Source: Mytilus californianus
Lineage: Eukaryota
DNA: 64,000 nucleotides
Direction of reading: 5' to 3'
Assembly (NCBI RefSeq): GCF_021869535.1
Contig: NW_026262712.1
Span: forward strand, 79,360,001 to 79,424,000
This document shows positions 1-60,462 of this stretch, in pieces (positions within the stretch are counted from its first letter, which is position 1; each line of letters starts with the position of its first letter). The notes below the pieces were generated by a model, which was not told where the DNA came from, searched no databases, and saw nothing but the letters and a program-made list of their open reading frames with translations. The translations under genes were made by a program, and so were the position numbers.

Positions 1-3000
1 CTATGAAGAATGGTTCTTTCCATATGGCGCTTTTAAAGTACTCGGACGTTCTGCCTCAATAACTGGACTGTTGCAGTAAGGATCCTGAACAACCCTTAAC
101 CTGCTATTATTAGCATACGGCCTATGTACAGGTAACGACGGTTTTATTAAGGATGACTCAACGGTAGATTCACTCCATGTCGTTGCCATCTCTTTTGATA
201 TTGGTTTTGCAGAACAATACTTTCTATATGATGTTGTGTCTTTACTTTTACGTTCAGCTTCAGTAAATGTTTTGTTACAAGAATAATCTTTATTAACATC
301 TGTCCTATTTGTGTTGATTGGGTTCTTCTTGTGAATCCAAGTTGCTCGCAATAGTATTATCGTACACAAGATTAGGTCTTGTAGAAAAGTTTCTCGCAAA
401 AGTATTATCGTACACAAGATTAGGTCTTGTAGAAAAATTCTCTCTCTTTGATGATTTGTCTTTATTTTGACATTTAGCCGCAGTTAATGATTTGTTCCTA
501 AAAGAATCTTCAATAGCATCAATCCTTTTTGTATTAGAATGAGGTCTCTGGTCACGTAACGACGTTTTGCTTCAGGCTGAATCAATAAAATTTTCCCTGC
601 ATGTTGTTACCTCCGCTTCGTATTTAGATTTAATTTTTGAACGCTGTATTCCTTTATCGTGTACTAGAGGATCCCAATTGGTCGTATAGGCACTATCAGT
701 GACAAAACTAGGCCTTGAACATGTTGAAGAAAGTGTCTTTCTATGTGATGATTTCAATATACTTGGACGTTCAGCTGCGGTAAACGGTCTGTTAGAGTTT
801 GAATCTTGAAAACCCGATATCCTACTTTTATAAGCATTAGGTCCTGGGACACGTAACGAAATTTTGCTTTTGGCTGACTCAAGAGAATAATAGCTTTTGG
901 TGCCTCTTCGTTTGACTTTTTGGTTTCATTTGAAATGACAATTTGTTGATCAGGTACTGGTGAATCTAAGTTGCTCTTAAAAGTATTAACAGACAAAATT
1001 AGGTCTTGCGGGAAAATACTTTCTATATAATTATTTGTCTTTACTTTGAAGTTCAGCCTCAGTAATTGTTTGGTTACAAGTAGAATCGTCACTTTTATCT
1101 GTGCTACTTGTCAAACCACGAGCTTTTTGAGCAGGTAATGACGTTTTGTCTAAGTGTACCCCAAAGGATGATGAAATGAATGTCGTTGGCTCTTCTTTTG
1201 GTTTTCTTTTCTTACTATTGCTTGAAAATTTCATTTCTTGATCGGGTTCTTGAGATTTCAAGTTGTTCACAAAAGTATTATCAGAGACAACACAAGGTCT
1301 TGCCGAAATTGACTTTCTATATGGTGATTTACTTTGTCCGTCAGCCTCAATATATGGTTTGTTACAAGAAGAATATTTAATATCCTCTGTTCTTCGTTGC
1401 AATGATAACGATGTTTTGCTTACGGTTGACTCACAAAAGGATTGACTGCATACTGTTGTCTCTTCTTCAGATTTTGATTTTGTTCTGGAAAGCTGAAATT
1501 CTTCATCGGGTTCTTGAGATTTTATGTTGGTCGTAAAATCATTATCAGTGAGAAAACTATGCCCTGAAGAATACTTATTTCCGTGTGGTGATTTCAATAT
1601 ACTCAGACGTTCACCCTCCTCAGCAACTGGTCTATTATAGTAAGAATTTTGGATAACCCCTGTCCTACTGTTATATGCAGGAGGTTCTTGGACACGTAAC
1701 GAAAATTTACTTAAGGTAATCCATTAGAGTAATTACTGTTTGTCGTTTCCTCTTCCCTCGATTTTGTTTTTATACTTGAGCGTTCAATGTCTTGATCAGG
1801 AATTTCAGATTTCAAGTTGCTCGTTAAGGCATTATCAAAAACAAACTTTCTATATGATGATTTGTCTTTACTTTGACGTTTATCCTCAGTTAATGTTTTG
1901 TTACAAGAAGAATCTTTATTAACTTCTGTCCTACTTGTATCAGGATGAGGTCGATGTACAGGTGACGACGTTTTGTTTGAGGTTGACTCAAAAGAAGATT
2001 TACTGTACATCGTTGACCCTCCTTTGAACTTTGTTTTTATAGTTGAAAGCTGAAATCCTGTATCGAGTACTTGATATCCCAAATTGTTTGTAAAAAGTTT
2101 TATCAGTTGCAAAGGTAGGCCTTGTAGAATGGTCCTTTCCATGTGGTGATCTTAATATATTTGCTCGGTCAACATTCGAAACTGTTCTGAAATCATCTTG
2201 ATTAATATCTGTCCTACTTTTATAAGCATGAGGTACCTTTCCAGGTAATGATGTTTGGCTTAATGCTGACTCAAAAGAAGGTTCACTATATGTCTTTGCT
2301 TTTTCTCTAGATATTGATCCAACTCTTGAAAGTTTAATGTTTTGATCTGGTACATGATAGTCCAAGTTATTGTTAGAAAAAGTATTACCAGTGCCAATAT
2401 TTGACCTTGAATAATGGAATTCTCTGTATGGTGATTTGTATATAAAATGACGTTCGGACAGAGTGACTGTGTTGTAACAGTAAGTATCTGGAATATCATC
2501 TGTCTTCAGGGGTTTAGCCTGCGGTTCTTGTACACCTAACAAAGTTTTGTTTACGTTTGGCTCTATAGAATATTTACTACATTGTGTTGCCTCTTATTTA
2601 GATGTTGTTGTACTTGATAAATGAATTTCTTTATCGGATACTGGGGAGTCACTGTTTCTTACATAATTATTATCAAAGCGGAAAGTGGGTTTTAAAAAAT
2701 ATTTAATACTATAAGATGATTTGTTTTTGCTTGAACGGTAAACCTCAGCAACTGTTTTGTTATATAATGAATCTTTAAAGATATTCGTCTCACGTTCATG
2801 GGCATGAAAAGCAGATTCACTTACGGTATTTCCATTCAATTCCAGAAATGTGTTTGGTTTCCATGTTCTCCATGTATGGCCTCCGGGGTCTCTAGATCCT
2901 TGAATCTTTATCGAAATACCGTCATTGGTCGTAGTAAATTTTTTCCGTCTGAAAAGTCGCTGTGGAATTTCATCAACTTCGAATTATCAGCTGTGTAAAA

Positions 3001-3163
3001 CCTCCCATTTTTTATTACAACGGAAATATTTGGAATGTCCTTCGGTGAAATTGATTTAGTTAACAATTCATCTAAAGTGTCCCCTATAAATTTATCATTG
3101 AATTGTGTGTATTTACCCCAAGTGTTTGCAATAGAAAATTTCTGATGGTCTTAACTTCATCAT
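1..3163 (-). pseudogene. Copy A of the DNRR-domain/97-aa-repeat family; disabled; runs off the window edge
   Basis: ATGATG at 3163 begins MMKLRPSEIF. Relative to copy B it has a 14-nt deletion removing SQDS and an ~55-nt deletion removing RRLWVF...; GDTLDELLT, KDIPNISVV, GRFYTADN and KFTTTNDGISIKIQGSRDPG are still readable. About 10-11 repeat units follow, broken into ORF fragments (2594-2839, 2000-2542, 1711-2142, 1031-1597, 1-417). Confidence 0.85.
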
Positions 3164-3630
3164 TCCCGAATACGTCGACTACACAACACATGTTATCTAT
3201 TACACTACTGCTAATTTTAGTTGTACTTTCGATATCGATATTTTTAGAAAAGGGATATTTTGAGTTTTTTCAAAACGTTTCGGAAAACCAACGATTTGCA
3301 TATTCGAAACATCGATTACTAAATACCCCATACAAAATATCAATTCTAATTTGACACAAATAAAATGGATGTTCCAATTTCTCTGCACATGACATGTTTC
3401 TATGGAATAATCATCATCCTATTCTCGTTGGTACATCGAATTTCCAAACCAGACCAGATAGTGCTATTTTATTTATCATTTAACATCCACGATTCCTTAC
3501 CATATAATATGTTTTTAGAGTTTGTCTATCATCATGTGGTGTTGAAATACATAGCCATAGCATAAAACGTAATAATAATATAAAAGTTGAAAAAGTGCCA
3601 AACAAACTTCACACCAAGATTTATAATTGA

Positions 3631-6999: not shown

Positions 7000-7860
7000 T
7001 CACATTTTATGATATATTGTTAAGTCGTGAATATTATCGAAACTAGTCAGTAGTTTCCGAATAAAATCTTGCATATTTTGTTGGTTTGATCTGATATACA
7101 CGCGACTTACTTCCGTTATTTGTAGTTGAAATGCAAATAGTAGCAGTTTGAATCGTTGATTTTCTTCCAACAATAAACTATCCCTGTTGCAGTATGCTAT
7201 TGTTGGCCGATCGCGAGCTTTATTATTTTCTTCGTATTCCTCTTCACATTCTTTTACATTCTGCATACTAGCGGTTCCATGTTACTCGAAACGAAATTAT
7301 CATCACGCTTATACTTCATCTGTGGAGATATGCTATTGCTGTATGATGATTTGTATATACTAGTACTTGGAAGGCGATCATCATAATCTGAGTTTGCATC
7401 TTCCATCACCTCTGTCATTCTTATAATAGGAGATTCTTGGACACGTAAGGAAAAGCTACCTAATTCATTCTCATTATGTCCGCGACATACGTTTGGTTCC
7501 AATGTTAATGTTCTCCAGATTACACCTCCAGGGTCCCTTATCTGTATTGAAGTACCATCATTAGACGTTGTAAATTTAGTGCCAGTTTTAGTTCTTAAAA
7601 TTTACATTAGTTACTTGATGAGCATATATGTTATGTATAAATCTAGCTTCTTCGGCTTTTAGAAATACCCACAATCGTTGATTGTCTGCTGTGTAAAACT
7701 TTCCATTTGTCATAACAATAGTATTATTTGGATATATAATATGCAATTCGTCTTTTGATTTCTTTATTAGTTTTTCACTGCAAGGTGGTTGTACATCAAA
7801 TCTGTTTGAGATAGTGTCTTGTGAGTATGTTTTTAGCTGTAGAATATTTTATATACAACT
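7000..7860 (-). pseudogene. Copy E: compact, degraded paralogue (domain + ~1 repeat + tail)
   Basis: Minus-strand translation gives SQDTISNRFD, PNNTIVMTNGKFYTADNQRLWVFLKAEEA and RTKTGTKFTTSNDGTSIQIRDPGGVIWRT. One repeat-like unit follows (7254-7502), then an 88-aa ORF (7000-7266). The start codon is lost and frameshifts are present. Confidence 0.8.
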
Positions 7861-13299: not shown

Positions 13300-14450
13300 G
13301 CAATCAATTAAAAAAAGTCTAGGCAAATTTATGTTGGACTTACGCATCGACTTTTCAATCATTCACAATACATGTACTTGTAAATATCTAGCAATCTTAT
13401 TAGGATGTTTGTTGTCTCACCTAACAGAACTTATGTCTATTGTTATTTTCTGTCGTGTTCAATTTGTTCAAATTCTTTTTCAGAATTGTTTCCCGCTTGG
13501 TCCATGAGTGTGACTTGGAAGTATACCTCAAACATTAAATTTTTCTTTTTTACTTGAAATATCTAGAACTGCATGAACAGGTTTATATTTTAATTCTTCC
13601 TCACGTTTTGAAATTAGCATACTTTTAACTGAATTTCTTTACCGGCTATTGCGAATTTTGAATTGTTCGAAAAACTTGGCTGCGACGAATGTCATATTTA
13701 AATGATGATTTCTACATATTAGACAAACGGTTGTTTTGTTTTGAAGAGAATCTTTATACTTTTATTTTCGGGATCTTTTTAACAAGTATTCAATAAAGCA
13801 TTTTCCCATGGACAAATTATGTAGTTGTGTCTTATTGTGGAGTCGACAGAAGATTTACATCCTAGCTATAGCGTTGGTTGTTCATCAGCTGTTGATCATT
13901 TTATACTTGAACAGTGAATTTCTTTGTCTAATACTTCAGCTGGACATTCTCTGCTACTCTATTTTTTTATTACTGTATAATTAATAACTGTAATAATTGG
14001 TATGTACTTCAATTGTGAGCATCGATAACTGTTTGTGGTTCAAAAGGAATCCTGATTAACATTCATAATACTCTGATTAACAAGAGGTCCTTGGACAGGT
14101 AACGATGTTTTGCTTAAGATTGACTCGAGAGAAAAATCTTAATCTTTGTGTTGGCTCTTTTTTCAGCTGTTGAAATTTTTAACTTAAACGATGAATTTCT
14201 TCCTTGGAAACTGAGGTTTCACAATGCCAAAACACATTATCCAAACCAACAGCAGACTTTTTAGAAAGGTAATAACTATATGATAAATTATATGTACTTG
14301 AATTCTGAGTTTCGGTAACTGTTTCGTTACAGAAAGAGTCTTGACTAACATCCGTCCTACTTTATGATAAGCATGAGGTCTGTGGTCATGTAACGAAGTT
14401 TTTCTTACGGTTGACCTGAGAGAAGATTTAATATTAAGTGTTGACTCCTT
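13300..14450 (-). pseudogene. Decayed continuation of copy B: further repeat units plus the shared 3' tail
   Basis: After the TAA at 14451 the frame continues KESTLNIKSSLRSTVRKTSL (repeat consensus) and then frameshifts. 13320-13620 is homologous to 25650-25860 and 40200-40420. Confidence 0.7.
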
Positions 14451-17396
14451 TTAAGTTGTTGATCTCTTCATATTTGAACGATGATTTTTTTTGTCGGATA
14501 CGTAATATCTACAGTTACCCAAAACATCATTATCACACCAAAAATGAGGCTTTCCAGTAATGTTATCTTTATATGATGATTTGTATGTATTTGGATGTTG
14601 AGCCCCGGTAACTGTTTCGTAACAGAAGGAATCTTGACTTACATTCATGCTACTTTGATTAACAACAGTTTCTTTGACTCGTAGCGAAGTTTTTCTTACG
14701 GTTGACCTGAGAGAAGATTTACTTTTAAGTTTTGGATCTTTTTGAACTGTTGATCCTTTTATACTTACACGTTGAATTATGTTGTCGGATGATGGATATT
14801 TACAGTTACCCAAAAAATCATTAGCATATCGAACATGAGGTTTTCCAGTAATGTTATCCGTATATGATGATTTGTTTGTACTTGGATGTTGAGCCTCGGT
14901 AATTGTTTCGTAACAGAAGGAATCTTGACTCTCATCCATGCTAGTTTGATAAACAATAGGTCCTTGAACACGCAAAGAAGTTGTTCTAATGGTTGACGTG
15001 AAAGGAGATTTACTACGTTTTGGCTCTTTTTCACCTGTTGATTTTTTTATACTCGAGAGATGAAATGTTCTGTCGGATACTGGATATTCACAGTTGCCAA
15101 AAAAATCATTATCAGAACTTACATCAGGCTTTCCTGAAATGTATTTACTATATGATGATGTATATGTATTTGAATGTTTAGACTTGGTAATTGTGTTGTT
15201 GCCGAAGGACTCTTGATTTATAGGTGCTCTTCTTTGATTAACCAGAGGTTCTTGTACAGGTGGCGAAGTTTTTTTTATGGTTGACTCGAGAGAAGATTTA
15301 CTATTAAGTGTTGGCTCTTTTTCAGCTGTTGATCTTTTTATACTTGAACGGTAAATTACTTTGTCTGATTCTGGGTATTCACAGTTGCGTACCAAATCAT
15401 TATCCCATCGAACATCAGGCTTTGCAGAAATGTAATCATTATATGATGGTTTGTATGCACTTGGATGTTGAGCATCGGTAACTGTTTTGTTGCCGATGGA
15501 ATGTTGATCAACTTTCGTCCTACTCGGATGTCCTTCGACACTTAACGAAGTTTTGTCCAAAATTGAATCGAGAGAAGATTTACTTCTTCGTGTTGGTTCT
15601 TCTAGAGCTGGTGATGGTTTTATAATCGAACTGTGAATTTCTTTGTCTGATACTGGAGAGTCATAGTTGCTCGAAAACTCCTTACAACTCCTAACATCAG
15701 GCTTTGCAAAAATTAATTCATTATATGATTGGAATGTACTTGGATGTTGAACCTCGTGTTTTTTAAAGACGGAACATTGATTATCACTCGACCTACTTTG
15801 ATTTTCATGAGGTGCATGGACATGTAAAGAAGTTTTCCTTAAGCTTGACTCAAGATATGATTTACTGCATTGTGTTGCTTCTTTTTCAGCTTGTGATCTT
15901 TTTATAATTGAGAGCTGAATTTCTTTGTCAAATACTGGAGGTTCAAGATTCCTTGAATGAGCAGCATTAGACCGATAACTAGGCCTGGAATAATAGTTAT
16001 AACAGTATGATGATTTGTATGTACTTGGATGTTGAGACTCGGCAACTGTTTTGGAACGGAGGGGATCTTGATTTACATTCGTCCTACTTTGATTAACAAG
16101 AGGTCCGTGGACACTTAACGCAGATTTTCTTGCGGATAATTCGAAAAAAGATTTAGTTCTTCGTGTAGGCTCTTCCTCAGCTGTTGGTTTTTGTATACTT
16201 GAACGATAAGGTTTTTTTGTTGATACTCTAGATTCGCTGTTGCTTGAGAAATCATAATCATAAAGACAATCAGTCTTGGCAGAAATTTTATCAATATACG
16301 AGTATTTATATGTACTTGCATGTTGAGCCTCAGTAACTTTTTTGTTGCCGAATGAATCTAGATTAACATTCGTCCAACTTTGATGGCCTTGGGCGCGTAA
16401 CGTAGTTTCACTTGAGATTGACTCGAGAGAAGATTTACTACGTGTTTGTTTTTCTTCAGTCGGTGATGGTTTTATAATGGGACTGTGAATTTTGTTGTCC
16501 GATGCTGGAGAGTCCCACTTGCCCGAAAACTCATTATAACTCCGAACATCAGGCTTTACAGAAATGTAATCACTATATGATTTAAATGTTCTTAGATGTT
16601 TAGCCTCGCTTGCATATTTGTTAGAGAACGAATCTGGATTAACACTTGACCTACTTTGATTTACGGGAGGTCCTCGGACATGTAATAAATTGTTCCCTAC
16701 GGTTGATTCTAGAGTCGATTGACTGCATTTTCTTGTTTCTTTTTCTGCTTTTGGTCTTATTATGGTGGAAAGCTGAATTTCTTTGTCAGCTACTGGAGAT
16801 TCGACGTTGCTGGAATGAGAATCATCAGACCGATAACTAGGCCTGGAGTAATAGTTTTTACAATGTGATGATTTGTATGTACTTGGATCTTGATACTCGG
16901 AAACTATTTTTGTACAGAAAAAACCTTGATTTACATTAGTCCTATTTTCAATAGCATAAATCTTACGGGAACGATAGGCAGAACTGCTCACTGTGTTTTC
17001 ATGTACTTTCCGAAATGTGTTTGGTTTCCACGTTCTCCATATTTGCCCTCCGGGGTCTCCAGATCCTCGAATCCTAATCGAAATTCCACCATTAGTCGTT
17101 GTAAATTTTGTTAGATTGACATGTCGCTGTGTAACTTGATCAAATTCAATGTCATCTAAAAATCCCAATTCTTCTGCTTTTCGAAAAACCCACAGTCTCC
17201 GATTGTCAACAGTGTAAAACTTTCCATTTATTAGTACAGAGGTAATATTTGGAATGTCCTTCAGTGAAATAGATTCAGTCAACAATTCATCTAACGTGTC
17301 TCCTATAAATTTAGCATTGAAAGCTGTGTGTTTACCCCAATTGTTTGCAATAGAATCCTGTGAAAAGAATATTTCGGTTGGTCTTAACTTCATCAT
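14451..17396 (-). CDS. Copy B: uncharacterised protein, ~120-aa ParB/sulfiredoxin-like DNRR domain + 9 Ser/Lys/Thr-rich ~97-aa repeats (981 aa from MMKL; 990 aa from the upstream ATG at 17423)
   Basis: Uninterrupted ~2.95-kb ORF in AT-rich DNA. Domain spans 17028-17396, with DNRR at 17196-17207. Repeats begin QHPSTYKSSY-like. The MMKL start is shared with the paralogues. Confidence 0.8.
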   Translation of the reverse strand: MMKLRPTEIFFSQDSIANNWGKHTAFNAKFIGDTLDELLTESISLKDIPNITSVLINGKFYTVDNRRLWVFRKAEELGFLDDIEFDQVTQRHVNLTKFTTTNGGISIRIRGSGDPGGQIWRTWKPNTFRKVHENTVSSSAYRSRKIYAIENRTNVNQGFFCTKIVSEYQDPSTYKSSHCKNYYSRPSYRSDDSHSSNVESPVADKEIQLSTIIRPKAEKETRKCSQSTLESTVGNNLLHVRGPPVNQSRSSVNPDSFSNKYASEAKHLRTFKSYSDYISVKPDVRSYNEFSGKWDSPASDNKIHSPIIKPSPTEEKQTRSKSSLESISSETTLRAQGHQSWTNVNLDSFGNKKVTEAQHASTYKYSYIDKISAKTDCLYDYDFSSNSESRVSTKKPYRSSIQKPTAEEEPTRRTKSFFELSARKSALSVHGPLVNQSRTNVNQDPLRSKTVAESQHPSTYKSSYCYNYYSRPSYRSNAAHSRNLEPPVFDKEIQLSIIKRSQAEKEATQCSKSYLESSLRKTSLHVHAPHENQSRSSDNQCSVFKKHEVQHPSTFQSYNELIFAKPDVRSCKEFSSNYDSPVSDKEIHSSIIKPSPALEEPTRRSKSSLDSILDKTSLSVEGHPSRTKVDQHSIGNKTVTDAQHPSAYKPSYNDYISAKPDVRWDNDLVRNCEYPESDKVIYRSSIKRSTAEKEPTLNSKSSLESTIKKTSPPVQEPLVNQRRAPINQESFGNNTITKSKHSNTYTSSYSKYISGKPDVSSDNDFFGNCEYPVSDRTFHLSSIKKSTGEKEPKRSKSPFTSTIRTTSLRVQGPIVYQTSMDESQDSFCYETITEAQHPSTNKSSYTDNITGKPHVRYANDFLGNCKYPSSDNIIQRVSIKGSTVQKDPKLKSKSSLRSTVRKTSLRVKETVVNQSSMNVSQDSFCYETVTGAQHPNTYKSSYKDNITGKPHFWCDNDVLGNCRYYVSDKKNHRSNMKRSTT

Positions 17397-17419
17397 TCCG
17401 GAAACGTCGACTACACAAC

Positions 17420-17740
17420 TCATGCTTTCTACTCCCTTTTACAACTGCTCATTATAATTTTACATTCAATATCGATATTTTTGAACGGATATTGTAAGTT
17501 ATTTCAAAACGTTTCGCATAATTGATTTGAATATTCGGAAAATCGATTATTAAATACCCTATACAAAATATCAATTTCATATTGACGGCTTTTTGTATAT
17601 ATTTTGGTTTTATATACTAGGTCATCAAATATCTTCTTTCAAAACGTATTCATGTGATGAATTGTTTCATTGGTATTTGTTATTTGTTCGTAAACAAAAT
17701 GGTGGTTCTAATTTCTCTAAAACATTTGTGTCACGTCATT
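17420..17740 (-). promoter_or_regulatory. Conserved upstream block (putative promoter/5'UTR) shared by copies A, B and C
   Basis: aaacgttt...gaatatt...atcgatt...aaatacc(c)ca/tatacaaaatatcaatt is shared with 3190-3345 and partly with 32480-32570; 17650-17730 matches 32640-32720. TATCGATA lies 70-74 bp upstream of the ATG in A (3233) and B (17470). Function is not demonstrated. Confidence 0.45.
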
Positions 17741-18900: not shown

Positions 18901-19824
18901 CTAAACCTCTCACTTGTATGACAGTCGCAGAGTTTACATTATATTGACAACGACAACAACAAAACAAACAGACATAATAATTGAAAATGTTGACAACGAC
19001 AACAACAAAACAAACAGACATAATAATTAAAAATGTACAACAGTCAACATTGTGTTATAATCATATAACAAAAAGACAGAAATTTACCATAGCACAATAA
19101 CACAATCACGGGATGTACAAGTAAATGAATTTATTGTACTCCAGCTGATTCTCGCGTATTGTTTTTTTTTGTGGACTCTATTTTTGCTATTTTCTCAATC
19201 AGTGTGTTTACTGAAGAGATGTATCCTGCCGATCTGACTTTAAATAAAGCTAATACTAACAAGATCTCTGCCCTTTTCTGGATCTTGATTATGGAACGCC
19301 GGAACTGTCTTATAGTGTAAATATTTAATGTGTTTTGTCGCTTTGCCTTTACGTCCTGTCATTTCTTCTTTATGTTATGTGCAGGTGCCTTTATTTACTG
19401 ACACTGCATCTCTGTTTTATGCCAAATTTATTATGTGTTTGGTCAAACAATTGTATGATATGTCATTGCTAAACTTTGTTGTGTGCAATAGGCATTTCAT
19501 TTTGCTGTAACTTCTATATATTCTGTGAATACCTCCAAACTTTATGATCAACCACCTATACATTCTTTCATATTTTCTCTCTGTTGTGTCTATTCTTCCT
19601 TTACGTAAGTCAGTTAATAATTGCGTCCTGTCTCAAATGTGATTGTCATGCTGAATGTTCTAAACGTTTTGTTTTGATACATCTTTGTTCTATGAAAACC
19701 TCATGATATTATAGTCTAACGGCTTTATGTGGTGTTTTTACATATGTATATCCAGTGAAAAACATAATACATCATGGTATAGTTCATATGCGTTTTGCCG
19801 AACAATTGATACTCTCTGTAAGCA

Positions 19825-20230
19825 TTCATTACGTTATGTGCAATGCCTTTTACATTATGTTCAGACACCTAATACATTATGTGAAACACTTATTACGTTA
19901 TGTGCAAACAGCTTATACATTTTGTGCAAACATCGTTTACTTTATGTGCAAACAGCTTATACGTTTTGTGCAAACATCGTTTACTTTATGTGCAAACACC
20001 TATTACGTTATGTGCAAATGCCTATTATATGTTGTGCAAACAACTATAACGTTATGTGCAAACACCTATTACGTTATGTACAACACCTATTTCATTATGT
20101 GCAAACACCTATTACGTTATGTGCAAATGCCTATTACATTATGTTCAAACATCTATAACGTTATGTGCAAAAACCTATTATGTTATGTGCAAACACCTAT
20201 TACGTTATGTGCAAACACCTATTACGTTCT
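19825..20230. repeat. Minisatellite, ~22-bp unit attacgttatgtgcaaacacct with variants
   Basis: Direct inspection; this explains the two overlapping low-complexity plus-strand ORFs. Confidence 0.9.
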
Positions 20231-22310
20231 GGTAAACGCTTTTTTGACACAGATTAAAACAAAACGCATCAATGATTTACACTTTGAAAATTAAGAATAT
20301 TACTAGTTTGAGCTTTTTAAAAAGCTGTGGACTGCTTCGCTGTAAATATTTGTGCATCGGTTTGTTGATTTAATATTGGAAATGTGGTATTTTTAGATAT
20401 TGATTGATATAAAAACGCTAAATAAATATTTAGATTTTAGGGGAAATTATGTTGTTCTACTTTAAGAGTGTGCGTTATACAACCATGCTTTTAAAATTTT
20501 GTTCACTTTACTTGTTGAAGGTCGTTGAAAATTAAAACATTTACAAATATACAAACACGACTCTAGTTTCCAAGAAATGCAATCGAATGGAACAATACAA
20601 TATAAAAAAGAAGATGTGGTATGAATGCCAATGTGACAACTCTTTACAAGAGACCACATGACGCAGAAATTAAAAACAATAGGTCACAGTACGGTCTTCA
20701 CCAATGAGCAAAGCCCGTACCGCACTGTCAGCTATTAAAGGCCCCGAAATGACAAATATAAAAAACAATTGAAACCAAAAAACTAGCGGCCCAATTTATG
20801 TACCAAAATATGAACTAAATACAAATAAGTAACGCAACAACAAACGACAACCACTAAATTACGAGCTCCTGACTTGGGACAGGTACATATAGAATGTGGC
20901 GGGGTTAAACATTTTAATTGGAGCCGAACCCTTCCCTTAACATGGGACAGTGGTGTAACACTACACCATAAGAACAAACTATAAAAACTAGTTGAAAAAG
21001 GCTCAACTCATGAGTTGGATACATATAGAAATACATCTAACAAAAACATAGAGTGGACCTGGCCCAGTACTTGTATACGTACGGCCCAACAAAAAAGAAC
21101 ACTAAGTACAGATCTGAGAGTACTCGCAGTTACTAACAGCCGTTAGTTCAAAGTTCCCATTGTTTCTCCCGACTGCAACCTCGAACTAGAAATATAACGG
21201 GTGTCAGGATGATTTGTTATTACCCTCCCAGTAGGCTATTCTAGCGAGAAACGTGAACCAGTTTAATGCTACCAATGCAATGACGTCTCCCACGATTTAT
21301 GTATATAGCAGCTAAGGAATCCTGCAATAAAATTAAATAAATGATTTTGGGTATTTTTAAAAGTCCCCTTGAGTTTAGAAAAAAAAAATCCGCTCACGCT
21401 TCCAAAGATTATTCTACAATTTTGAAATTGACAAAACAAATTTAATGTATAACTAAAGTCAGTTTCTTACTTTAAAGGTATTGTTCAACATTGGTCATGA
21501 GTACTCAAATGTTTCCATTTTCGTTTATATGTATTTTGTTTTTTTTTTGGTGATCATTGTACTGAATTTCCAATGCATGGAAGTAATTAAAGTCGTAGTC
21601 ATGCGTAAATCCTAAATTTTCAATTTTTACCACCCTCTTTTCAAGACTTTCAGAACAATTTCCCTCTGAATTTTACACTACCTCATGTGAACTGCATTAT
21701 CTTTACTTGAATGGTAAAGATGAGCCTCTACCACTTTGAATTGTCGAAGATATTTATTGACTTGGAAAGTACAACCATATTAAATGGACATAAAACATAT
21801 ACAAAATATATTATACAGAAATTCGTATGTTCCTGGTATTAAATAACACACATTCATAGGTTTTTTCTTCTGTATGTTCGTAATCTAAGTATGCACACCT
21901 GATATGTGCAAATTATAATTTACCTGAATTAGGATAATATATATATTCCGATCTGCAATAATAAACGATTTCAAGTAAGATTGAGCATTTGGGTTAAAGA
22001 ATCTACTTGATCATGACTTACACCTTCCCTTTGCAAATCCGTTACAGTTGATAAACCCAGAACAATGACGAGAAATTATGCTTTTCTTAAGATGCTTTAA
22101 AAGAAAGTGTGCTTAATAAACATGATAGATGTTGTTGTTATTGGTTCTCATCATGGTTCTTTTGATTAATAGTCCCACAAAAATTAGAACATTCTCGTCA
22201 CTTCAATTCAAAACCATCAAATGAAAATTGCATAATAATACATTTTCTGTACGCACGCAAATATTTGTATCACCTTTTTTTTTATTTTGGATGAATTGCA
22301 ATTATAATAC

Positions 22311-28600: not shown

Positions 28601-31600
28601 GAGAAACCATAAAGAGGAAAATTTCGACAATCAACTCGAACAGAAACCTCCATAAAAAGACTTGTTTTAACATATAAAATGAAAATTTGCCTGTAACACA
28701 CATTTAGTAACTCTGGTTTATATCACGAAGATTGAGACGTCACATGTTCAGACAAATAAAGAGGAGTTCTTGCAGATCATTAAAAAAAACCTAGCCAACC
28801 CCAAAAACCAAAATTAGTGTAATGAGGATAATATTCACATGTGCCAGCTTTGTTGCGATATATCTAACGACCTGTCGGGAAATTACTACGAAATTTTTTT
28901 TTTAAATCTATTCAAAATCTGAATTTGGGAAAAGCAGGAGACGAATATGGGATATAAGCCGAACATTTGAAATTATCACTTATCGTTCAAATGTATTTAG
29001 AAAGAAAAACCAGCGAACAATTCAAGTCTGGTATAAAAACACCAGTCTTTAAAAATAGCAAAGACGACAGCATATTGGAATGAATGTTTGAATTCAAACA
29101 TTTTCTTATAATATCTATAGAAACTACATTTCACCTCACTTACTTTTCAGCCTTGAGGTTTTACCTCTTACAACTGGCCTAATCAATGCTTTGTGTAAAT
29201 TCCACTTATCCGTTTTAATAGTTATCAAAGGTACGAGGCTAATAATTTAATATGCCAGAACGCGCGTTTCGTCTACATAAGACTCATCGGTGACGCTCAG
29301 ATCAAAATAGTTAGAGAGACAAACAAGTACAAAATTAAAGAGCATTGAGGACCCAATGCTATTTAAGTTATTTCAACAAGAACAGCGTCAATAGCAGTAT
29401 ACTCCCTAATTAGCGACATCCCTATACATGTAGTAGCAGAGTTTCATGATAAACAATAACGCCTTCTACACTCAATTCGTGCTTTAAAAAATCAAACTAT
29501 AAGTGCGCCAGTACCAAATACAAATAAGCAATGGAACGTTGCTCCACAGAACTGAAATATCCTTCGTCAATATAGTCTAGTCTCCCAACAAAAGTAAAAT
29601 GGAAACAGATTGTTAGATCTGCTATAAGTTTTAGATCAATACATTTAGGTCACTTAGTACAGAGAAATCAACCCTAAATCAGCTATGTATTGGCAATATC
29701 AGTGATTGAGAAATATATCCAGTTTGGAAAACTGCAACAGAAAATCAAGGGGAAATAATGAAATCTACTAGTATAACAAAACTAGGATACTTACCAGAAC
29801 ATACTTCTTACAAGCAAATAAAGCAATACATATATTTAACATAGGCAGTACAGATCCACTTCGCCCGTTATGCAAACTCGAGGAAGAAAAACTCCAACAT
29901 TTTCGAAATAGATGCCCAACTCTGGAAGGGGTTTGAATGACCTTTCCCTATTAATACAGGCTTTATTTAATTAAATTGGAATTGAACAATTGAAAACAAA
30001 TTTTCAGAATAGTTACTCCTTGGGCCAATTTATTGTTAAATTCAGAAAACTACTTGGCTCTATACTGCCAAAAAAGATAGTTTCCTGAATACTCTTCAAT
30101 CGGTTTCTAGGAGCTGTTATAAATTATATCATCAGGGGTTAACTCAGCTAAACGCTCGAACATTACAAATATTATCATTCATTGCATATGGATTTGAATG
30201 TTAATCAATACTTTTCAGAGTACAAACAAGTTGTGCATATAAAATACAGTTAGATGTGTACACGAAAGAAATAGTTGTATTTTGGTATAGTGAAGTTGAA
30301 TTATTATACAGGCAGTTGATATATAGACAGCACTAAGCTGATGTACGTAATTGAAAGAGTCCTCCATATATGGTGCGTCATACCACGGTTGACTATCGCC
30401 ATAAAGTTTATTAGTAATGTTTTCAGATTTCAGACCTTTAGAAACTTTTAGAAGCGTACAACTTAGTAATATAGTGTATTTCTTTTGATATCTTCCATGT
30501 AATACAAGCCCATTATATTATTAGAAAGTGCGTCTTAAACTGTAATAATTCAATAGTTAGTTTAGCTATTTTTGTCCCTGTAATATAAGCCCACTGAAAA
30601 AATCCAGAAATTGCCGTGCTCCTAACCACAAAAGGAAGTTACAAAAAGAAGCAGAAGAAGATTCACAGATGTCCAAACAATCATTGTCACATCGAACATC
30701 AGTCTTAGCAGAAATTTCATCACTATATGATGATTTGTTTGTACTTGTATATTGAAACACGGTACCTGTGTTGTTACAGACGGAATAATAATTAACTTTC
30801 GACGTTTTTTGTTTAATAACAGGTCCTTGGACATAACAAAGTGTTTTTATTGCTGGCCTCGAAAGAAGATTTACTTCTTAGTGATGACTCCTCTTCATCT
30901 ATTGATCTTTTTAGGCTTGAATGTAGAATTTTATTTCTATGTTGGGTATTATAGATTCACTGTTGCTCCAAATAGCATTATCACACAACAAGTCAGGCTT
31001 GTCAGAATTATTTTTACTGTATACTAGTTTGTATGTACTTGGATGTTGAGCCTCGGTGACTGGTTTGTTACAGAAGGAAGATCGATTAACACTCGTTCTA
31101 TCTTGTTTAATAATGGGACCTTGTACACGTAACAAAGTGTTTATTTTTGCTCGACTCGAAAGAAGATTTACTTCTTATTGATGGCTCCTCTTCAAATGAT
31201 GATCTTTTTATACTTTTTCGTCGGTGTAATATCAGCCCAATGAAAAAATCAAGCAATTTATGTGCTCTTAGCCACAAGAGGAAGTTACAGAAAGAAGAAG
31301 AAGATGCTCTACAGATGCCCAAAATCATTTTCACATAGAACATCAGGCATAGCAGAAATACAACCACTATATGAAGATTTGTATGTACTTGTAAGTTGAG
31401 CCTTGGTAAAAGTGTTGTTACAGCAGGAATTTTGATTAAAATTCGGTCTATTTTGATTAATAAAAGGTCCTTGGACCAGTAAAGAAGTTTATATATTTCT
31501 TGACTCAAAAGAAGATGTACTTCCTCTTGTTGGATCTTCTTTAGCTGTTGATCTTTTTATACTTGAATGCGACATTACTTGGTCGGATACTGGAGAATCC

Positions 31601-32373
31601 CTACTGCTCGATGATGTGTGTATATTTGGACTGTAGAAATCTTGAGTAACATTTGTCTTATTTTGATATACAGTAGGTCCTTGGACACGTAACAAAGATT
31701 CTATATATTTTGAATCGAAAGAAGATTTCGTATGTTTTGATGACTTTTCATCAACTTTTGTTGTTTTTATACTTGGAAGCTGAATTTTTTCTCAATACTG
31801 GAGTTTCGCTGTTGACCGAAAAAGAATTATCACACCAGACATCAGGCGTTGCAGAATTGTAATTGTTATATGATGATTTAAATGTACTTGGATAGTGAGC
31901 CCCGTTACAGAAAGAATTTTTAATAACATTCGTCCTACTTTCATTAGCATGAATTACATGTGAACGTAATGCAAATTTTTCTGTATTTTCTTTTTTATCC
32001 TGATTTGTTTGGTTTCCATGTTTCCATGTTTTCCATGTTATACCTCCGGGGTCTCCAGATCCTCGAATCTTCATCAAAATTCCGCCATTATTCGTTGTAA
32101 ATTTTATCGTGTAACATGATTAACTTCGATTGTATGTACAAATCCCAATTCTTCGGCTTTTTGAAATATCAAAAGTCGCCGATTGTCAGCTGTGTAAAAC
32201 TTTTTATTTTTAATTACAACCGTAATATTTGGAATGTCCTTCAGTAAAATATGTTCAGTTAGCAATTCATCTAACGTTTCCCCCATCAATTTTGATCTGC
32301 AGGATGATTGTTCGCATCATTTGTTTGAAATAGAGTCCTGTGAAAAGAATATTTCCGATGGTCTTAACTTCAT
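25650..32373 (-). pseudogene. Copy C: disabled paralogue, repeat region interrupted by insertions
   Basis: ATG at 32373 gives MKLRPSEIFFSQDSISNK*(TGA at the W position)...GETLDELLTEHILLKDIPNITVVIKNKKFYTADNRRLLIFQKAEELGF...TR*, then RGSGDPGG and an 8-nt duplication (catggaaa) frameshift. Repeat remnants lie at 30570-31950 and 25860-27450, and the tail at 25650-25860. Confidence 0.8.
27460..30500 (+). mobile_element. Heavily degraded L1/Tx1-like LINE remnant inserted in copy C
   Basis: Plus-strand motif relics in the expected order: SRIDYIL (~28291), GWKLN (~28385), IWDIV (~28523) and LCKLEEEKLQHF..RCP (~29870). No long ORF. Confidence 0.5.
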
Positions 32374-33750
32374 TATTCCCGAATACGACGACTTCATAAA
32401 ACATCCTTCTTACATCCTTTCACAAAAATCCTTTCATTTTCCTATCACAACAGCTAAATTTAGTTGCACATTCAAGGGATATTTTGAGTTATAATAAAAC
32501 GTTTCTGAAAACTTAAAGATTTGAATTTTCGAATAATCAAATATCGAATATCCCATACAAATTACCAATGTTATCATAAAAACTTGTCATATAATTGAGA
32601 TTAAAACTATATCCTGAAAATATTCTACTTTCAATATGACTTCACGTGAAGAATTGCTTCCCTTACATTTGTGATTTGTTTGTAAACGAAGAGGTACTTT
32701 TAGTTTCCCTGCGAATGACATGTTTCTATTGAATTAGATTCTCGTTGATACCTTGAATTTCAAAATCAGATAGTATTATTTTATCTATCATATCAAATAA
32801 CATCTCGATTTCATAGCATAGTATATTATATATAAATTAAATATAATAGAATATAATAGAATATAATATAAATAAGTCCATTAAATATCAACCCAACGAT
32901 ACAAAAAGAAGATGATAAAAAACAAATAGAGGTCAATTTGTGGCATTCAATAATAGAAAGGTCAATATATATTACTATTGTTAGCCATTCGTTTGATGTG
33001 TTTGAGCTTTTGATTTTGCCATTTAATTAGGGACTTCCTTTTGTATTTTCCTCGGCGTTCAGTATTTTTGTGATTTTACTTTTTACTAGTATTCCAACAG
33101 ATACTCTCCTTCATCTGCTCTGGGTACTGTTATACACCCAATAAACGTAACGTTTCAATGTATAATAGATACGTTGATGATACGAAGTGATTTTGTAAGT
33201 CTTTCAAGAAGGGGTCATGAAATAGTACAAAGATAATTTGTGTTTTTTTTATTTATCCTTGTAGTAAGACTTGTTTGTGAACATTATTCATCGTTTTCCA
33301 GTAATTCACCTATTGATAACTTACTCAATGAAATTATTATTGCAATGTTTTCAGAAAATTGGTCTAAATATAACTTACTTAAGGTAATATTTGAATCGTA
33401 ACATAGATTGATACTCGACACTAAATATTTACGACCTGGTTATCTTCTTAAACAAATATATTAGAAATAACAAAAATACAAATCGAAGTTCAGATATCTT
33501 AAAATTTAGTACAGGAACTTGAATATATTCTAAATATGTCTTCCGTGTATCATCATTACCTATGGAATAAGATACCTTTAAATATAAGACAATGCGGTTT
33601 ACCTTATCTTTGATTAAACAACACATATGTTTGTAAACAAAATCAGGACCAATTTTCCATGCATTATAACGTTTGATCTCCCTCAATTTCAATTTCTATT
33701 TTAAATGAATTACTAGATACAGTAAACCGTCGTTATTTGAATAGAGTTGA

Positions 33751-36700: not shown

Positions 36701-38205
36701 TGACGACCATTTAATATCCTCAATCCTGTCGATTTACATAATTTTATTAGTTTCGAACCATAATAATTAAATATAGTATCTGGATTTATGCGTGTAGATT
36801 ACGAAGAGTCATTGCTATAATTGAATAGATTTGGTAGTTGATTTTGTAATGTTATATGGACTGTATCATCTTCAATGAAGTCAGAGACATTTGACGTTCT
36901 GCAATTCAAATCACTAACAAGACTGATTTTTCCTTTAGATGAATATGAAATTATGTTGTCTTCCATTAATCGAAAAATATCACACTCATATAGTGAATGG
37001 TACTTTGAATTAATTGGAGGTATGTAGGCACCACATACATATAAATCCTGATCAAAATCAAATAGCAATTTGTCAATTTTCTAACCACTCGAATGTATCA
37101 GCAATAGATTCAATAAAGGAAATATATGGACTGTATATGGTATTTATCATCACACATAATCCACCCCCTTGCGTACATTTTGATTTATTTCTCGGAATTG
37201 CGTTACACATAAACCCTTCTATGTCGAAAGTAAAATCATTACTTATCCAACATTCCGAAAGTATAACAATATCATAAGTTTGTAAATAACTAACAAAAGC
37301 TTCGTCATCCAGTTTATTTTGCAAACCACCGTTGACATTCCATGCTAGAAATTTAATATTGCTATCTGGTAAGAAAACTTCACGTCTGTCCTAGTTCCCG
37401 TTATCACCACCTTGAGCGCCCCCTTCATCCATAGCCTTGGGCTGTTTTATTAAGTGACTGTGTTTGGTTTTGTCAAAAAGTTCACCATCAATATACAATT
37501 TATCACGTTTAAGTACTGATTTGAGTTTTGCTTGCGTGCTTCTTTGTGTATTGGTAGTAGCTCTTTACGGATTTTCCTAACTTCATGAGGAAAATGTTCA
37601 TTTACTCCGAAAGGTTTCCTCTTTAGGTGTTTAGGGGCTGCAAAATGAATGTCTTGTCGATCATTCCTGTTTTCAAATTTTACAACAATTGGTCTCATTT
37701 TCCCATCACAATTTTTTCCTATTCTGTAAGATTTAACAATAGGAATTTCATGAACGATCTCGAGCTCAGTTCTAACAAAGGCTTTAACTAAGTCATCAGT
37801 TACTTCATCCGTTTGTTCGTCAATACCATTAAAAACTAAGTTTTCGTTCAGCTTTTGACACTGCAGGTCTAGTACAGACTATCTCAAGCGCTCGTTTTCT
37901 GCTTTTATAACATTTAAGCAATCTAAACTAACATTGTCAGATTTAGATTTTTTTTCATTTGCAATTTTCGAAATTTCCGCTTTAAAAACAGTGTTTTTCT
38001 TTTCGACTGAAGCTATTCTCTCGTGCAACATTTTATTTTGGTTTTTTGAGACTGCCATATTGTTTTTGTTTTCTTTCGTAATATCGTTAAGTTTACCGCT
38101 CACAAAAACTGAACTTTTTTCAACATCTCCTAACCGTTTATTAACTGCAACTATATTTCCTTCTAAATTTTGCATTTGGCTGATTAAACGGTTCTCAACT
38201 TAGAC
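33751..38205 (-). mobile_element. Non-LTR retrotransposon (APE endonuclease + RT; RTE-X/CR1-group, clade not resolved), 5'-truncated in ORF1, frameshifted
   Basis: ORF1 fragments (RPIVVKF...FGVNEHFP), endonuclease (FLAWNVNGG...DIVILSECW; SVIDYF; SDH), RT (NFRGISLVSCLAKLF; LLMYADD), C-terminal CSLC...EDEMHFILSCP, and AATAAA plus an (ATTGA)n tail at 33751-33778. Confidence 0.9.
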
Positions 38206-49469: not shown

Positions 49470-52400
49470 CATATAATAAATGTTCAATTCAATCCATTCA
49501 TACTTTGACAAGAAATACTTCATAATATAGATTTTCTCTCGTTTTTTGCTGCTCTGAAAATTTTCAAACCTCCATACTCAAGGGCACATAACTGGATCTT
49601 GGTCAGGTATCGCAGATTTTCTTTTTAAAGTTGACTGGAAAGACGATTTACGTCTAAGCTTTCTCTCTTCTACAGCGTTTAATCTTTTTATTCTTGAAAA
49701 CTGAAATTCTTTGTCGGATACTAGAGATGTACGGTTGTTCAAAAAATAATTATCTCCCCGAAAACGAGGACTTGAAAAAGCATTCTCACCGACACAACTA
49801 GACCTTGAATAATTGTCATTACCATATGCTGCCTTATATGTTTTTTTATGGTGAACCACTGTATCTGTTTTATTACCGAAAGAATATTGAATAGCATTCG
49901 TTCTTCTTTCTTTCACAGGAGGGTCATACAGACGTAACGAAGTTTTTCTAAAGGTTGGCTCGAAAGAAGATTTACTTCTCAGTATTGCCTCTTTTTCAGC
50001 TTTTGAAGTTGTATATTGAATTTCTTTGTCGTAAAGTGAAGATTCTGTGTTGCTCGAAAAATGATTATCTCCCCGAAAACTAGGAATCGAAAAAGCATTC
50101 TCACAGACATAACTAGGCCTTGAATAATTGGCATTACCATATGATGATTTGTATGTACTTTGATGTTGATCTGCGGTAAATGTGTTATTGCAGAAAGCAT
50201 CTTGAATAGCATTCGTTCTTCTATGTTTTACAGGAGGTTCAAAGATGCGTAACGAAGTTTTTCTAAGAGTTGATTCGAAAGAAGATTTACTTCTTAGTGT
50301 AGCCTCTTTTTAAGCGTTTGGTCTTATAAAAGTTGTATATTGAAATTCTTTGTCAGAAAGTTAGATTCTTTGTTGCTCGAAAAATAGTTATTTCCCCGAA
50401 AACTATGACTTGAAAAGGCATTCTTACAGACATAACTAGGCCTTGAATAAGTGGCATTACCATATGATGATTTGTATGTACTTTGATGTTGATCTGCGGT
50501 AAATGTGTTATTGCAGAAAGCATCTTGAATAGCATTATTCCTTCTTTGATTAACAAGAGGTTCATAGCCACGAAACGAAGTTTTTCTAAAGGTTGCCTCG
50601 AAAGAAGATTTACTTCTCAGTATTGCCTCTTTTTCAGCTTTTGAATTTGTATATTGAATTTCTTTGTCGTAAAGTGAAGATTCTGTGTTGCTCGAAAAAT
50701 GATTATCTCCCCGAAAACTAGGAATTGAAAAGGCATTCTCACAGACATAACTAGACCTTGAATAATTGGCATTACCATATGATGATTTGTATGTACTTTG
50801 GTGTTGATCCACGGTAAATGTGTTATTGTAGAAAGCATCTTGAATAGCATTCGTTCTTCTATGTTTCACAGGAGGTTCAAAGATGCGTAACGAAGTTTTT
50901 CTAAGAGTTGGTTCGAAAGAAGATTTACTTCTTAGTGTTGCCTCTTTTTAAGCGTTAGGTCTTATTAAAGTTGTATATTGAAATTCTTTGTCAAAAAGTG
51001 TAGATTCTTTGTTGCTCGAAAAATAGTTATCTCCCCGAAAATAATGACTTAAAAAGGCATTCTTACAGACATAACTAGGCCTTGAATAAGTGGCATTACC
51101 ATATGATGATTTGTATGTACTTTGATGTTGATCTGCGGTAAATGTGTTATTGCAGAAAGCATCTTGAATAGCATTATTCCTTCTTTGATTAACAAGAGGT
51201 TCATAGCCACGAAACGAGTGTTTTCTTGAGGTTGGCTCGAAAGAAGATTTATTTCTTAGTGTTGGCTCTTTTTCAGTTTTGGATCTTACAAAAGTTGGAA
51301 ATTCAATTTCTTTATTTGATACTGTAGATTCACAGCTGCTGTGATTTCTATATGATGCTTTGTATGTATTTGGGTGTTGAGCCTCAATTACTGTTTTATT
51401 GCCGAAAGAATTTTGAATAGCATTCGTCCTTATTTTATTCACAGGATGGCCATAAACATGTAACAAACCTTTCCTTAAGGTTGGCTCATAAGAAGATTTA
51501 CTTCTTAGTGATGCCTCTTTTTTAGCTGCTGATCTTATACAAGTTGTAAACAGAATGTCTTTGTCGGTAACAGCAAATTCACGGCTGCTCGAAAAATAAT
51601 TATATTCTCGAAAACTAGGACTTAAAAAAGCATTATCACAGACATAACTAGGTCTTGTATATTTGGCTTTATCATATGATGATTTGTATGAACTTTGATG
51701 TTGATTCTCAGTAAATGTTTTGATACCAAAGGATTCTTCAATAGCATTCCTCCTACTTTGATTCACAAATTGAAGTTTTCTGTCGGAAACTGTAGATTCA
51801 CAGTTGCTCGAAAATGCATTATCACATCGACTAGTTTGTGTCCTGCTTTGATTTACAGAAGGTTCATGAACTCGTAAAGAACGATATCTAGAGGTTGACT
51901 CGAAAGATGAATTATAACATATTGTTGCCTCTTTTTCAGTGTTTGATCTGGTAATACTAGACAACTGAATTTCTGTTTCGGATAATGGAGATTCACGGTT
52001 GTTCGAAAAATAATTATCTTCCCTCAAAAAAGGCCTTGAAACATTATTTTCACAGACAGAACGAGGCTTTGAACAATTGTAATTTCTATATGATGATTTG
52101 TTTATACTTGGGATTAAGCCGCGATAACTGTTTTGTTACAGATAGAATCTTCAATAACATTCCTCGCCTGACATGTAATGGATGTGTTTGGTTTCCATGT
52201 TCTCCAATGTCTACCTCCTAGGTCTCTTCGAATCTTTATCGAAATTCCATCATTATTCGTTGTAAATTTGGTCCCTCGTTTAGTTCTGAAATTTTGTTGT
52301 GTACCTTGAAACACTTCTATTTTTCATGTAAATATCCAAATTCTTCGGCTTTTCGAAAGACCCACAGTCTTCGATTATCAGTTGTGTATAACTTTCCATT

Positions 52401-52568
52401 TATAATTACAGCGGTAATAATTGCAATATCATCAAGTGAAACTGATCAGGTTAACAATTCATCCAATGTTTCCCTTATCAATGTATCACTGTAAGGTGTG
52501 CGTAGATCCCACCTGTTTGAAATAGAGTCCTGTGAATAGAAAATTTCCGATGGTTTTAATCTCATCAT
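49470..52568 (-). pseudogene. Copy D: disabled paralogue with ~8 longer (~107-aa) repeats
   Basis: ATGATG at 52568 gives MMRLKPSEIFYSQDSISNRWD...RETLDELLT*(52446)...NGKLYTTDNRRLWVFRKAEEFGY, then an A-run frameshift, then RTKRGTKFTTNNDGISIKIRRDLGGRHWRTW. Repeat ORFs lie at 50948-52027, 50324-50869 and 49578-49916. Confidence 0.85.
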
Positions 52569-52812
52569 TTTCGAATACGTCGACTGCCCAAAAACGTTTT
52601 CCTGCTTCCTTGTACGATAGCTTACGAATTCAGATAACATTATTTTATGATTTTAACAATTTGATATCAACTCAACGATATATAAATGTATACTTTGACG
52701 TATAATGGTTTACATTTATAAATTGTGACTTGGATGGAGAGTTGTCTCATTGGCACTTATACCACATCTTCTCATATCTATATAACAAAAAAAAAACAAG
52801 AAAAGGTCCAAA

Positions 52813-60408: not shown

Positions 60409-60462
60409 GCCTAGGTTAGACTCTACTTGAGGAATGACTGTTTCATAATGAAAATCAGCACT

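Follow-up and report, generated by a model that had tools for sequence, protein, structure and literature searches.

What kind of protein joins a conserved N-terminal domain without a Pfam definition to a long, degenerate repeat tail in a mussel? The question is raised by a reverse-strand open reading frame (ORF) at positions 14451 through 17423 of a 64,000-nucleotide (nt) stretch of the Mytilus californianus genome (RefSeq assembly GCF_021869535.1, contig NW_026262712.1, positions 79,360,001 to 79,424,000 of the forward strand; herein the window, numbered from its first letter). An initial annotation, made from the DNA letters and their translations, had proposed that the domain is a nucleotide-using enzyme of the ParB/sulfiredoxin (Srx) fold, possibly of bacterial origin. 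Structure prediction, profile searches, and a survey of bacterial genomes lead us to consider it rather probable that the ORF is a real mussel gene and that its domain is a divergent ParB/Srx-fold domain of toxin-tip descent, now part of an intracellular, domesticated effector or regulator that uses nucleoside triphosphates (NTPs).

Gene Structure and Domain Boundaries

The features of the gene are listed by position in the window, with repeat lengths in base pairs (bp).

14451..17423 (-): intact single-exon ORF of 990 codons (990 residues), with an N-terminal ParB-like domain followed by a repeat tail
17028..17396 (-): predicted ParB/Srx-like (Tox-ParBL1-like) domain, ORF residues 10-132, placed from translation, models, and relatives
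17349..17366 (-): FSQDSI motif, residues 20-25, holding the conserved N-terminal S21, Q22, and S24
17196..17207 (-): DNRR motif, residues 73-76, at the N terminus of the helix after the predicted β-hairpin; proposed phosphate-binding motif
17085..17108 (-): KFTTTNGG motif, residues 106-113, conserved in animal and bacterial members
14451..17003 (-): Ser/Lys/Thr-rich tail of ~8.5 degenerate 97-residue (291-bp) repeats, with no known-family match
13800..14450 (-): decayed, noncoding continuation of the repeat array past the stop codon

The window contains no N, and its G+C content is 0.30-0.36 over most of its length; that of the ORF is 0.35, like its flanks, and a 990-codon open frame is not attributable to chance in DNA of 35% G+C. 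A protein on record (P0079) is identical to the ORF product, and a Mytilus coruscus protein of 1242 residues is 77% identical to it. The coding sequence is free of introns, as the initial annotation had noticed. The second or third Met is where homologs have their first residue, which makes 17396 or 17393 the probable true start. Read on the (-) strand, 17028-17396 translates to 123 stop-free codons (MMKL to WRTW) that contain FSQDSI, DTLDELL, IPNITSV, GKFYTVDNRRLWVF, and KFTTTNGG; every motif originally quoted for this segment was found on translation. The protein lacks a signal peptide, and a Pfam search gave no recognizable nucleic-acid-binding domain.

Past approximately residue 135 the protein is Ser/Lys/Thr-rich with a 97-residue period, and the tail is probably disordered. 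At the DNA level it consists of 8.3 copies of a 291-bp unit (71% matching), and stop-ridden remnants of the repeat reach ~13800. Long repeat tails of the same kind occur in M. coruscus, M. galloprovincialis, and M. californianus. Against the M. coruscus counterpart the domain is 95% identical and the tail 74%; for five other relatives the corresponding ranges are 72-78% and 29-52%. These differences suggest that the domain is under constraint, while the tail evolves faster.

The Domain Is Predicted to Adopt a ParB/Srx Fold

AlphaFold2 models of the domain were obtained from two alignments, with a predicted local distance difference test score (pLDDT) of 86.8 and a predicted template modeling score (pTM) of 0.81 for alignment A1, and a pLDDT of 91.9 and a pTM of 0.86 for alignment A2. 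The modeled elements run in the order of two short strands, a helix, a β-hairpin (60-65, 68-71), a helix from N74 (74-85), and a strand (92-97); DNRR lies at the N terminus of the helix that follows the hairpin. When both models were compared with the Protein Data Bank (PDB) using Foldseek, the best 50 and best 45 matches, respectively, were all ParB/Srx-fold proteins, among them Noc, ParB, KorB, sulfiredoxin, Atu1540, SbnI, PadC, a Pyrococcus hypothetical protein, and a free serine kinase. Among predicted viral structures, almost all named matches were “ParB/Sulfiredoxin” proteins, several of them labeled “ParB-like nuclease domain.” Template modeling (TM) scores were 0.33-0.47 by query and reached 0.55 by target for sulfiredoxin. 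Judged from these models, the relationship to the ParB/Srx fold appears remote but specific.

The Domain Is Related to Bacterial Polymorphic Toxin Tips

A phmmer search with the window domain, run against 5.8e9 sequences, reached bacterial proteins at E 1e-5, and three of 78 matches from a word-indexed search look bacterial, with the domain at their C terminus. Scanning one genome per bacterial species yielded 42 loci from many phyla and groups (Chloroflexota, Planctomycetota, Verrucomicrobiota, Proteobacteria, Armatimonadota, Elusimicrobiota, Chlamydiota, Entotheonella, and others). In nearly all of these loci the domain ends 0-3 residues before the stop codon of an ORF of between ~100 and >2100 residues. 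The long ORFs encode RHS proteins, with RHS repeats, an RHS core, and DUF6531, one of them also with PAAR and prePAAR; a 447-residue protein that carries the domain has an eCIS core domain. A hidden Markov model (HMM) built from animal sequences only recognizes 40 of the 42 bacterial tips (best E 1.8e-19 at Z = 1.8e9). Sequence comparison establishes homology between the domain and the toxic tips that bacterial polymorphic toxins of the RHS type carry at their C termini, and the connection to such toxins that had been suspected from motif patterns is demonstrated directly by both the HMM matches and the RHS/PAAR context.

Directly downstream of the tip, 28 of the 42 loci have mutually similar ORFs of ~84 residues, usually with a 4-nt overlap, and nine of ten that were tested belong to Pfam family DUF7660. 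A further locus adjoins a Tox-HDC cassette and has a DUF7660 neighbor as well. A tip followed by a gene of ~84 codons is the arrangement typical of polymorphic toxin tips and their immunity genes, which makes the DUF7660 protein a candidate cognate immunity protein. Examples of the DUF7660 ORF are L004:6352-6606, L011:6326-6589, and L013:6313-6567 (from loci L003-L044), and L001:3384-3614. No paper mentioning DUF7660 was found in the searchable literature.

Animal and bacterial sequences form two separate groups, with identities of 46% within animals, 53% within bacteria, and 32% between them; a bacterial sequence is the nearest neighbor of just 1 of 216 animal-type sequences. In a search for named bacterial toxins using a mixed bacterial and animal alignment, the best 120 matches listed were all bivalve proteins.

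Residues Shared by Animal Proteins and Bacterial Tips

Conservation was counted over 216 animal-type and 39 bacterial sequences; some members of the animal-type set are nameless proteins of unconfirmed source from metagenomes and read archives. The bacterial loci were collected with the pattern DNRRL[WE][VA]F[RK], so that bacterial conservation at positions 73-80 is circular and is entered below as not independent.

P15: animal-type 211/216; bacterial 37/39
S21: animal-type 185 plus 13 T /216 (S or T 198); bacterial 37 plus 2 T /39
Q22: animal-type 207/216; bacterial 38/39
S24: animal-type 194 plus 14 T /216 (S or T 208); bacterial 38 plus 1 T /39
D73: animal-type 210/216; bacterial not independent
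N74: animal-type 215/216; bacterial not independent
R75: animal-type 211/216; bacterial not independent
R76: animal-type 216/216; bacterial not independent
L77: animal-type 216/216; bacterial not independent
K106: animal-type 210/216; bacterial 38/39
G113: animal-type 211/216; bacterial 38/39
R119: animal-type 205/216; bacterial 36/39

The positions of S21 and S24 are both S or T in all 39 bacterial tips, and a cysteine occurs in the DNRR columns once among the 216 sequences, at R75. The initial annotation had named a fold unlike ParB/Srx and unconserved DNRR arginines as grounds for abandoning its proposal. Both were looked at: the fold searches returned essentially only ParB/Srx-fold proteins, albeit with weak scores, and R75 and R76 are conserved in the homologs, the latter without exception among the animal-type sequences.

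Animal Relatives Carry the Domain at the N Terminus on Variable Tails

The 78 proteins found by the word-indexed search are all unnamed or “uncharacterized,” and the named sources among them are Mytilus, Saccostrea, Magallana, Mercenaria, Mizuhopecten, and Sinanodonta. The family is very large: when 1.84 billion cluster representatives were searched with a profile, 4409 matched at E <= 1e-3, of which 2181 reached E <= 1e-10 and 244 reached E <= 1e-30. The best 150 of the 4409 are all animal-type. Further named sources are Tegillarca, Mya, Pinctada, Mactra, Potamilus, Pecten, Argopecten, and Ruditapes, together with two from outside the bivalves, the tunicate Styela clava and the annelid Dimorphilus gyrociliatus. 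Pfam had no match at E <= 10 for the 990-residue protein, whether the domain or the whole ORF was submitted, and no real match for 34 relatives that were scanned.

Of 220 animal-type proteins, with a median length of 232 residues, 206 have the start of the domain among their first 15 residues, and 12 have at least two near-full copies of it. Tandem arrays of two or three copies are seen, for example, in P0091, P0092, P0094, P0096, and P0099. Of the 226 proteins collected, 32 have a CaaX-like box at their end and 55 have a hydrophobic tail there. Short bivalve paralogs (P0003, P0005, P0021, P0022, P0026, P0029, P0031, P0064, and others in alignment A1) have either a tail-anchor-like hydrophobic end or a CaaX-like C-x-I-L; such ends suggest tethering to the cytosolic face of a membrane. 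In P0156, a 784-residue protein from Mactra antiquata, the N-terminal ParB-like domain is fused to an HSP70-like region, and the source name is “Heat shock 70 kDa protein 12A.”

Comparison with Known ParB/Srx-Fold Families

A family of this kind had already been described in 2012, on computational grounds, as Tox-ParBL1, which the initial annotation did not mention. Tox-ParBL1 was defined as a second group of ParB-related toxin tips and was joined to ParB by HHpred at 93% probability; its arginine motif, [NT][RT][RT] and mostly RR, is equivalent to the DGHHR of classical Tox-ParB, and it has a conserved N-terminal Ser/Thr that is absent from classical ParB (Zhang et al. 2012, Biol Direct 7:18). 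It is found on RHS, FilH, MafB, LXG, and WXG toxins, as well as in several eukaryotes including metazoans, and its listed immunity partners are Imm-SUKH and Imm44 (Zhang et al. 2012, Biol Direct 7:18). The mussel domain and its relatives share with this description the predicted ParB fold, the motif, the N-terminal Ser/Thr, a C-terminal toxin-tip position with a downstream gene, and presence in metazoans. They may differ in their partner, which is DUF7660 in the loci examined here and Imm-SUKH or Imm44 in the paper; the Tox-ParBL1 paper lacks the bivalve expansion, the N-terminal placement, the membrane-anchor tails, and the Mytilus 97-residue repeat tail. The type member, Neisseria gonorrhoeae NGK_2271, was not among the named matches in our searches for relatives, and the supplement of Zhang et al. 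2012 contains no ParBL1 alignment as text. The domain is a probable member of Tox-ParBL1, assigned by the published description; a third, sister family of ParB-like tips is a possible alternative.

The closest experimental parallel is ToxB (Tox-ParB), the ParB-fold tip of CdiA toxins, which is an ATPase whose toxicity depends on the motif Arg (Kaljevic et al. 2026, bioRxiv 10.64898/2026.05.05.722872). Its phosphate-binding residues are G105-N106-H107-R108, and those of Caulobacter ParB are G101-E102-R103-R104 (bioRxiv 10.64898/2026.05.05.722872). Both the mussel family and ToxB have a ParB-fold toxin tip followed by an immunity gene or a candidate for one, and in both the motif ends in Arg, which is essential in ToxB (in the mussel, D73-N74-R75-R76). 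In the ToxB pair, the inhibitor iToxB covers the pocket. In contrast, Pfam PF02195 detects ToxB and not the mussel domain, Gly has become Asp, the SQDS and KFTTxNxG motifs are specific to the mussel-domain family, and ToxB is delivered between bacteria, whereas the mussel protein is encoded by the animal's own gene. ToxB provides a precedent, established by experiment, in which the toxic activity is to bind and hydrolyze ATP.

The CTP-dependent DNA clamps ParB, Noc, and KorB are the best structural matches, and their motif likewise follows a β-hairpin at the N terminus of a helix. The mussel protein differs in having neither a helix-turn-helix (HTH) DNA-binding domain nor a dimerization domain, no PF02195 match, and identities of 10-19% in the structural alignments. 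Sulfiredoxin, a minimal single-domain example of the fold and the match with the highest target-normalized TM score (0.46-0.55), is a eukaryotic ATP-dependent phosphotransferase with its catalytic cysteine within the phosphate-binding motif. The mussel motif, by contrast, has no cysteine, and there is no detectable sequence similarity between the two proteins. Sulfiredoxin and metazoan ParBL1 are regarded as separate acquisitions (Zhang et al. 2012, Biol Direct 7:18).

Proposed Mechanism and Alternative Activities

In the mechanism that we propose, an NTP would be bound in a pocket formed by D73-N74-R75-R76 at the helix N terminus and by the S21-Q22-D23-S24 strand, and would then be hydrolyzed or would donate its phosphate; the precedents for these two outcomes are ToxB (ATPase) and sulfiredoxin (phosphotransferase). 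We infer that the activity is most likely NTP binding or hydrolysis. The family would have come from bacterial toxin systems and undergone a lineage-specific expansion, with the anchor replaced in the Mytilus subfamily by the long 97-residue repeat tail. Because the domain is N-terminal, a signal peptide is lacking, and many paralogs have a hydrophobic tail or a CaaX-like box, we expect the animal proteins to work in the cells that make them, frequently at a membrane, rather than to be secreted as toxins. Their role would be that of domesticated effectors or regulators, plausibly in stress or immune responses; a role in immunity, stress, or cell death is a guess guided by their origin, by their expansion and rapid copy turnover, and by the HSP70-like fusion.

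A bolder version of this reading is possible, if doubtful: the animal clade would amount to a large, domesticated family of ParB-like effectors that consume NTPs inside the cell, often while tethered to membranes, and that serve cell-autonomous immunity or regulated cell death in bivalves and some other marine invertebrates (a tunicate, an annelid), with the variable tails (97-residue repeats, HSP70-12-like fusion) as sensing or targeting modules. If true, the clade would be a eukaryotic counterpart of the ATPase toxin ToxB without a bacterial DUF7660-type inhibitor, in a fold that was only recently shown to act as an ATP-hydrolyzing toxin (bioRxiv 10.64898/2026.05.05.722872). The family offers a concrete starting point for learning how an animal genome tames a bacterial warhead, and its conserved residues define a putative active site. 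The family itself is not new in kind, given the 2012 description, yet it is unannotated: since Pfam, NCBIfam, and PADLOC contain no model for it, genome annotation misses the ParBL1-type branch entirely. What seems to have gone undescribed is the expansion in bivalves, the architectures of the tails, the repeat-bearing subfamily of Mytilus, and the DUF7660 partner; the literature on ParB with sulfiredoxin, toxin, or Rhs and on ParB-like with metazoa yielded nothing on the mussel-domain family, and that on bivalves and horizontal gene transfer, including an eLife 2021 paper, made no mention of ParB.

Several observations weigh against the assignment to an NTP-using ParB/Srx-fold effector. The Foldseek scores are weak (best E 8.8e-4, root-mean-square deviation 3-6 Å, 10-19% identity), and no sequence method links the domain to ParB: searches of Pfam, NCBIfam, PADLOC, and the PDB (phmmer and two profiles) gave only low-complexity or chance matches. 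The proposed equivalence of DNRR to the phosphate-binding motif is drawn from its secondary-structure position and from the statement of Zhang et al. The Gly of the classical GxxR motif is Asp here (210/216), the final Arg being present and the Asn being as in the ToxB GNHR; the bacterial counts at this motif are circular for the reason given above. The 990-residue protein itself ends without a membrane anchor and without a CaaX-like box, four of the five local copies of the gene are decayed, and no experimental study of any family member was found in the searchable literature.

With the same fold and origin, the domain could instead be a nuclease that cuts DNA or RNA. Such an activity was the one first predicted for ParB-type toxin tips. 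Zhang et al. 2012 argue that nucleases are the prevailing kind of polymorphic toxin tip and that cleavage of phosphodiesters by ParB domains is possible, and the “ParB-like nuclease domain” labels among the viral matches point the same way. The same authors, however, say that the nuclease label of ParB rested on erroneous assumptions; ToxB, the only experimentally studied toxin of the ParB fold that we found, hydrolyzes ATP and does not bind DNA, and the mussel protein is devoid of any recognizable nucleic-acid-binding domain. We consider a nuclease unlikely.

It is likewise improbable, in our estimation, that the domain is a noncatalytic module for nucleotide-gated switching or interaction, as ParB is with CTP, placed as a regulatory head on variable tails. 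The closest folds are indeed those of the CTP-gated ParB, Noc, and KorB, and the animal proteins do combine a constant head with very variable ends (tail anchors, CaaX-like ends, repeats, the HSP70-like fusion). Yet the HTH and dimerization domains are absent, the bacterial tips are paired with an immunity-like gene, and the near-invariant polar residues common to bacterial tips and animal proteins point to conserved chemistry more than to a mere switch.

Decayed Paralogs Around the Gene

The NTP-using effector that we favor would be encoded by one member of a local cluster. Four further copies of the domain were found in the window using tblastn, all on the same strand as the 990-codon ORF.

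1..3196 (-): disrupted paralog, running off the window start, with the domain at 2846-3196 and repeats downstream; DNRR and SQDS lost
7470..7827 (-): disrupted, more divergent paralog, domain only; DNRR and SQDS lost
30659..32382 (-): disrupted paralog with the domain at 32021-32382 and repeats, motifs kept; further repeat fragments at 26744-27428
49587..52574 (-): disrupted paralog with the domain at 52183-52574 and a repeat array of 315-bp period; motifs kept

Each disrupted copy needs two frames to be read, and the matched stretches contain 8 (2846-3196), 0 (7470-7827), 1 (32021-32382), and 2 (52183-52574) in-frame stops; repeat tails follow the domain in three of the four. The cluster is one intact gene among four decayed paralogs, unless some of the frame changes are assembly errors. 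The motifs had been described as conserved across divergent copies. This holds among the 216 animal-type relatives, which are by far the stronger evidence, and, for KFTT, in all local copies including the four disrupted ones; it fails for DNRR and SQDS, which are kept only in the disrupted copies near 32 kb and 52 kb and lost from the other two. The window does not encode P0083 or P0084, two annotated relatives from M. californianus.

That the intact ORF is itself a relic, either a young pseudogene or material carried along by a repeat-rich region, within a tandem cluster that is decaying, would fit with the state of its neighbors, with a repeat array that decays just past the stop codon, and with the transposon fragments around the cluster. 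The ORF is nevertheless open over 990 codons with all motif residues intact, its domain is better conserved than its tail (95% versus 74%) relative to another species, and full-length relatives exist in three other Mytilus species; a relic is thus very improbable. The decay of the four copies fits rapid turnover and is uninformative on function. That the stretch is contaminating bacterial DNA, or came by a transfer too recent to have become part of host biology, would accord with bacterial toxin tips being the closest nonanimal relatives and is effectively refuted by a G+C of 0.35 like the flanks, a position between animal retroelement fragments and paralogs, the N-terminal placement of the domain ahead of a eukaryote-type tail, the occurrence of relatives in a tunicate, an annelid, and many bivalves, the separation of animal from bacterial sequences, and the absence of a DUF7660 partner, no relative of which was found within the window.

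Repeats and Retroelements in the Window

Fragments of the 97-residue-repeat tail lie away from any domain copy at 40732-41253 (-) and 26744-27428 (-); insertions or rearrangements have evidently fragmented the local cluster. A non-LTR-type (LTR, long terminal repeat) reverse transcriptase fragment occupies 42473-44525 (-), with Pfam RVT_1 on the ORF 43587-44525, and is a decayed retroelement copy, since neighboring ORFs lie in other frames. At 33954-36723 (-), two ORFs of ~220 residues with no Pfam match, in very AT-rich DNA (G+C 0.29), may be pieces of another retroelement. A run of ORFs of higher G+C (0.40-0.44) at 59212-63968 (-), with a retroviral-type aspartyl protease domain at 60466-60963 and a Gln/Pro-rich ORF of 501 residues, probably belongs to an LTR-type retroelement. 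A 22-bp minisatellite of ~18 copies at 19828-20228 gives rise to the long repetitive “ORFs” at 19727-20294, which are therefore not genes, and a 31-bp tandem repeat (4.8 copies, 90% matches) is present at 57722-57870.

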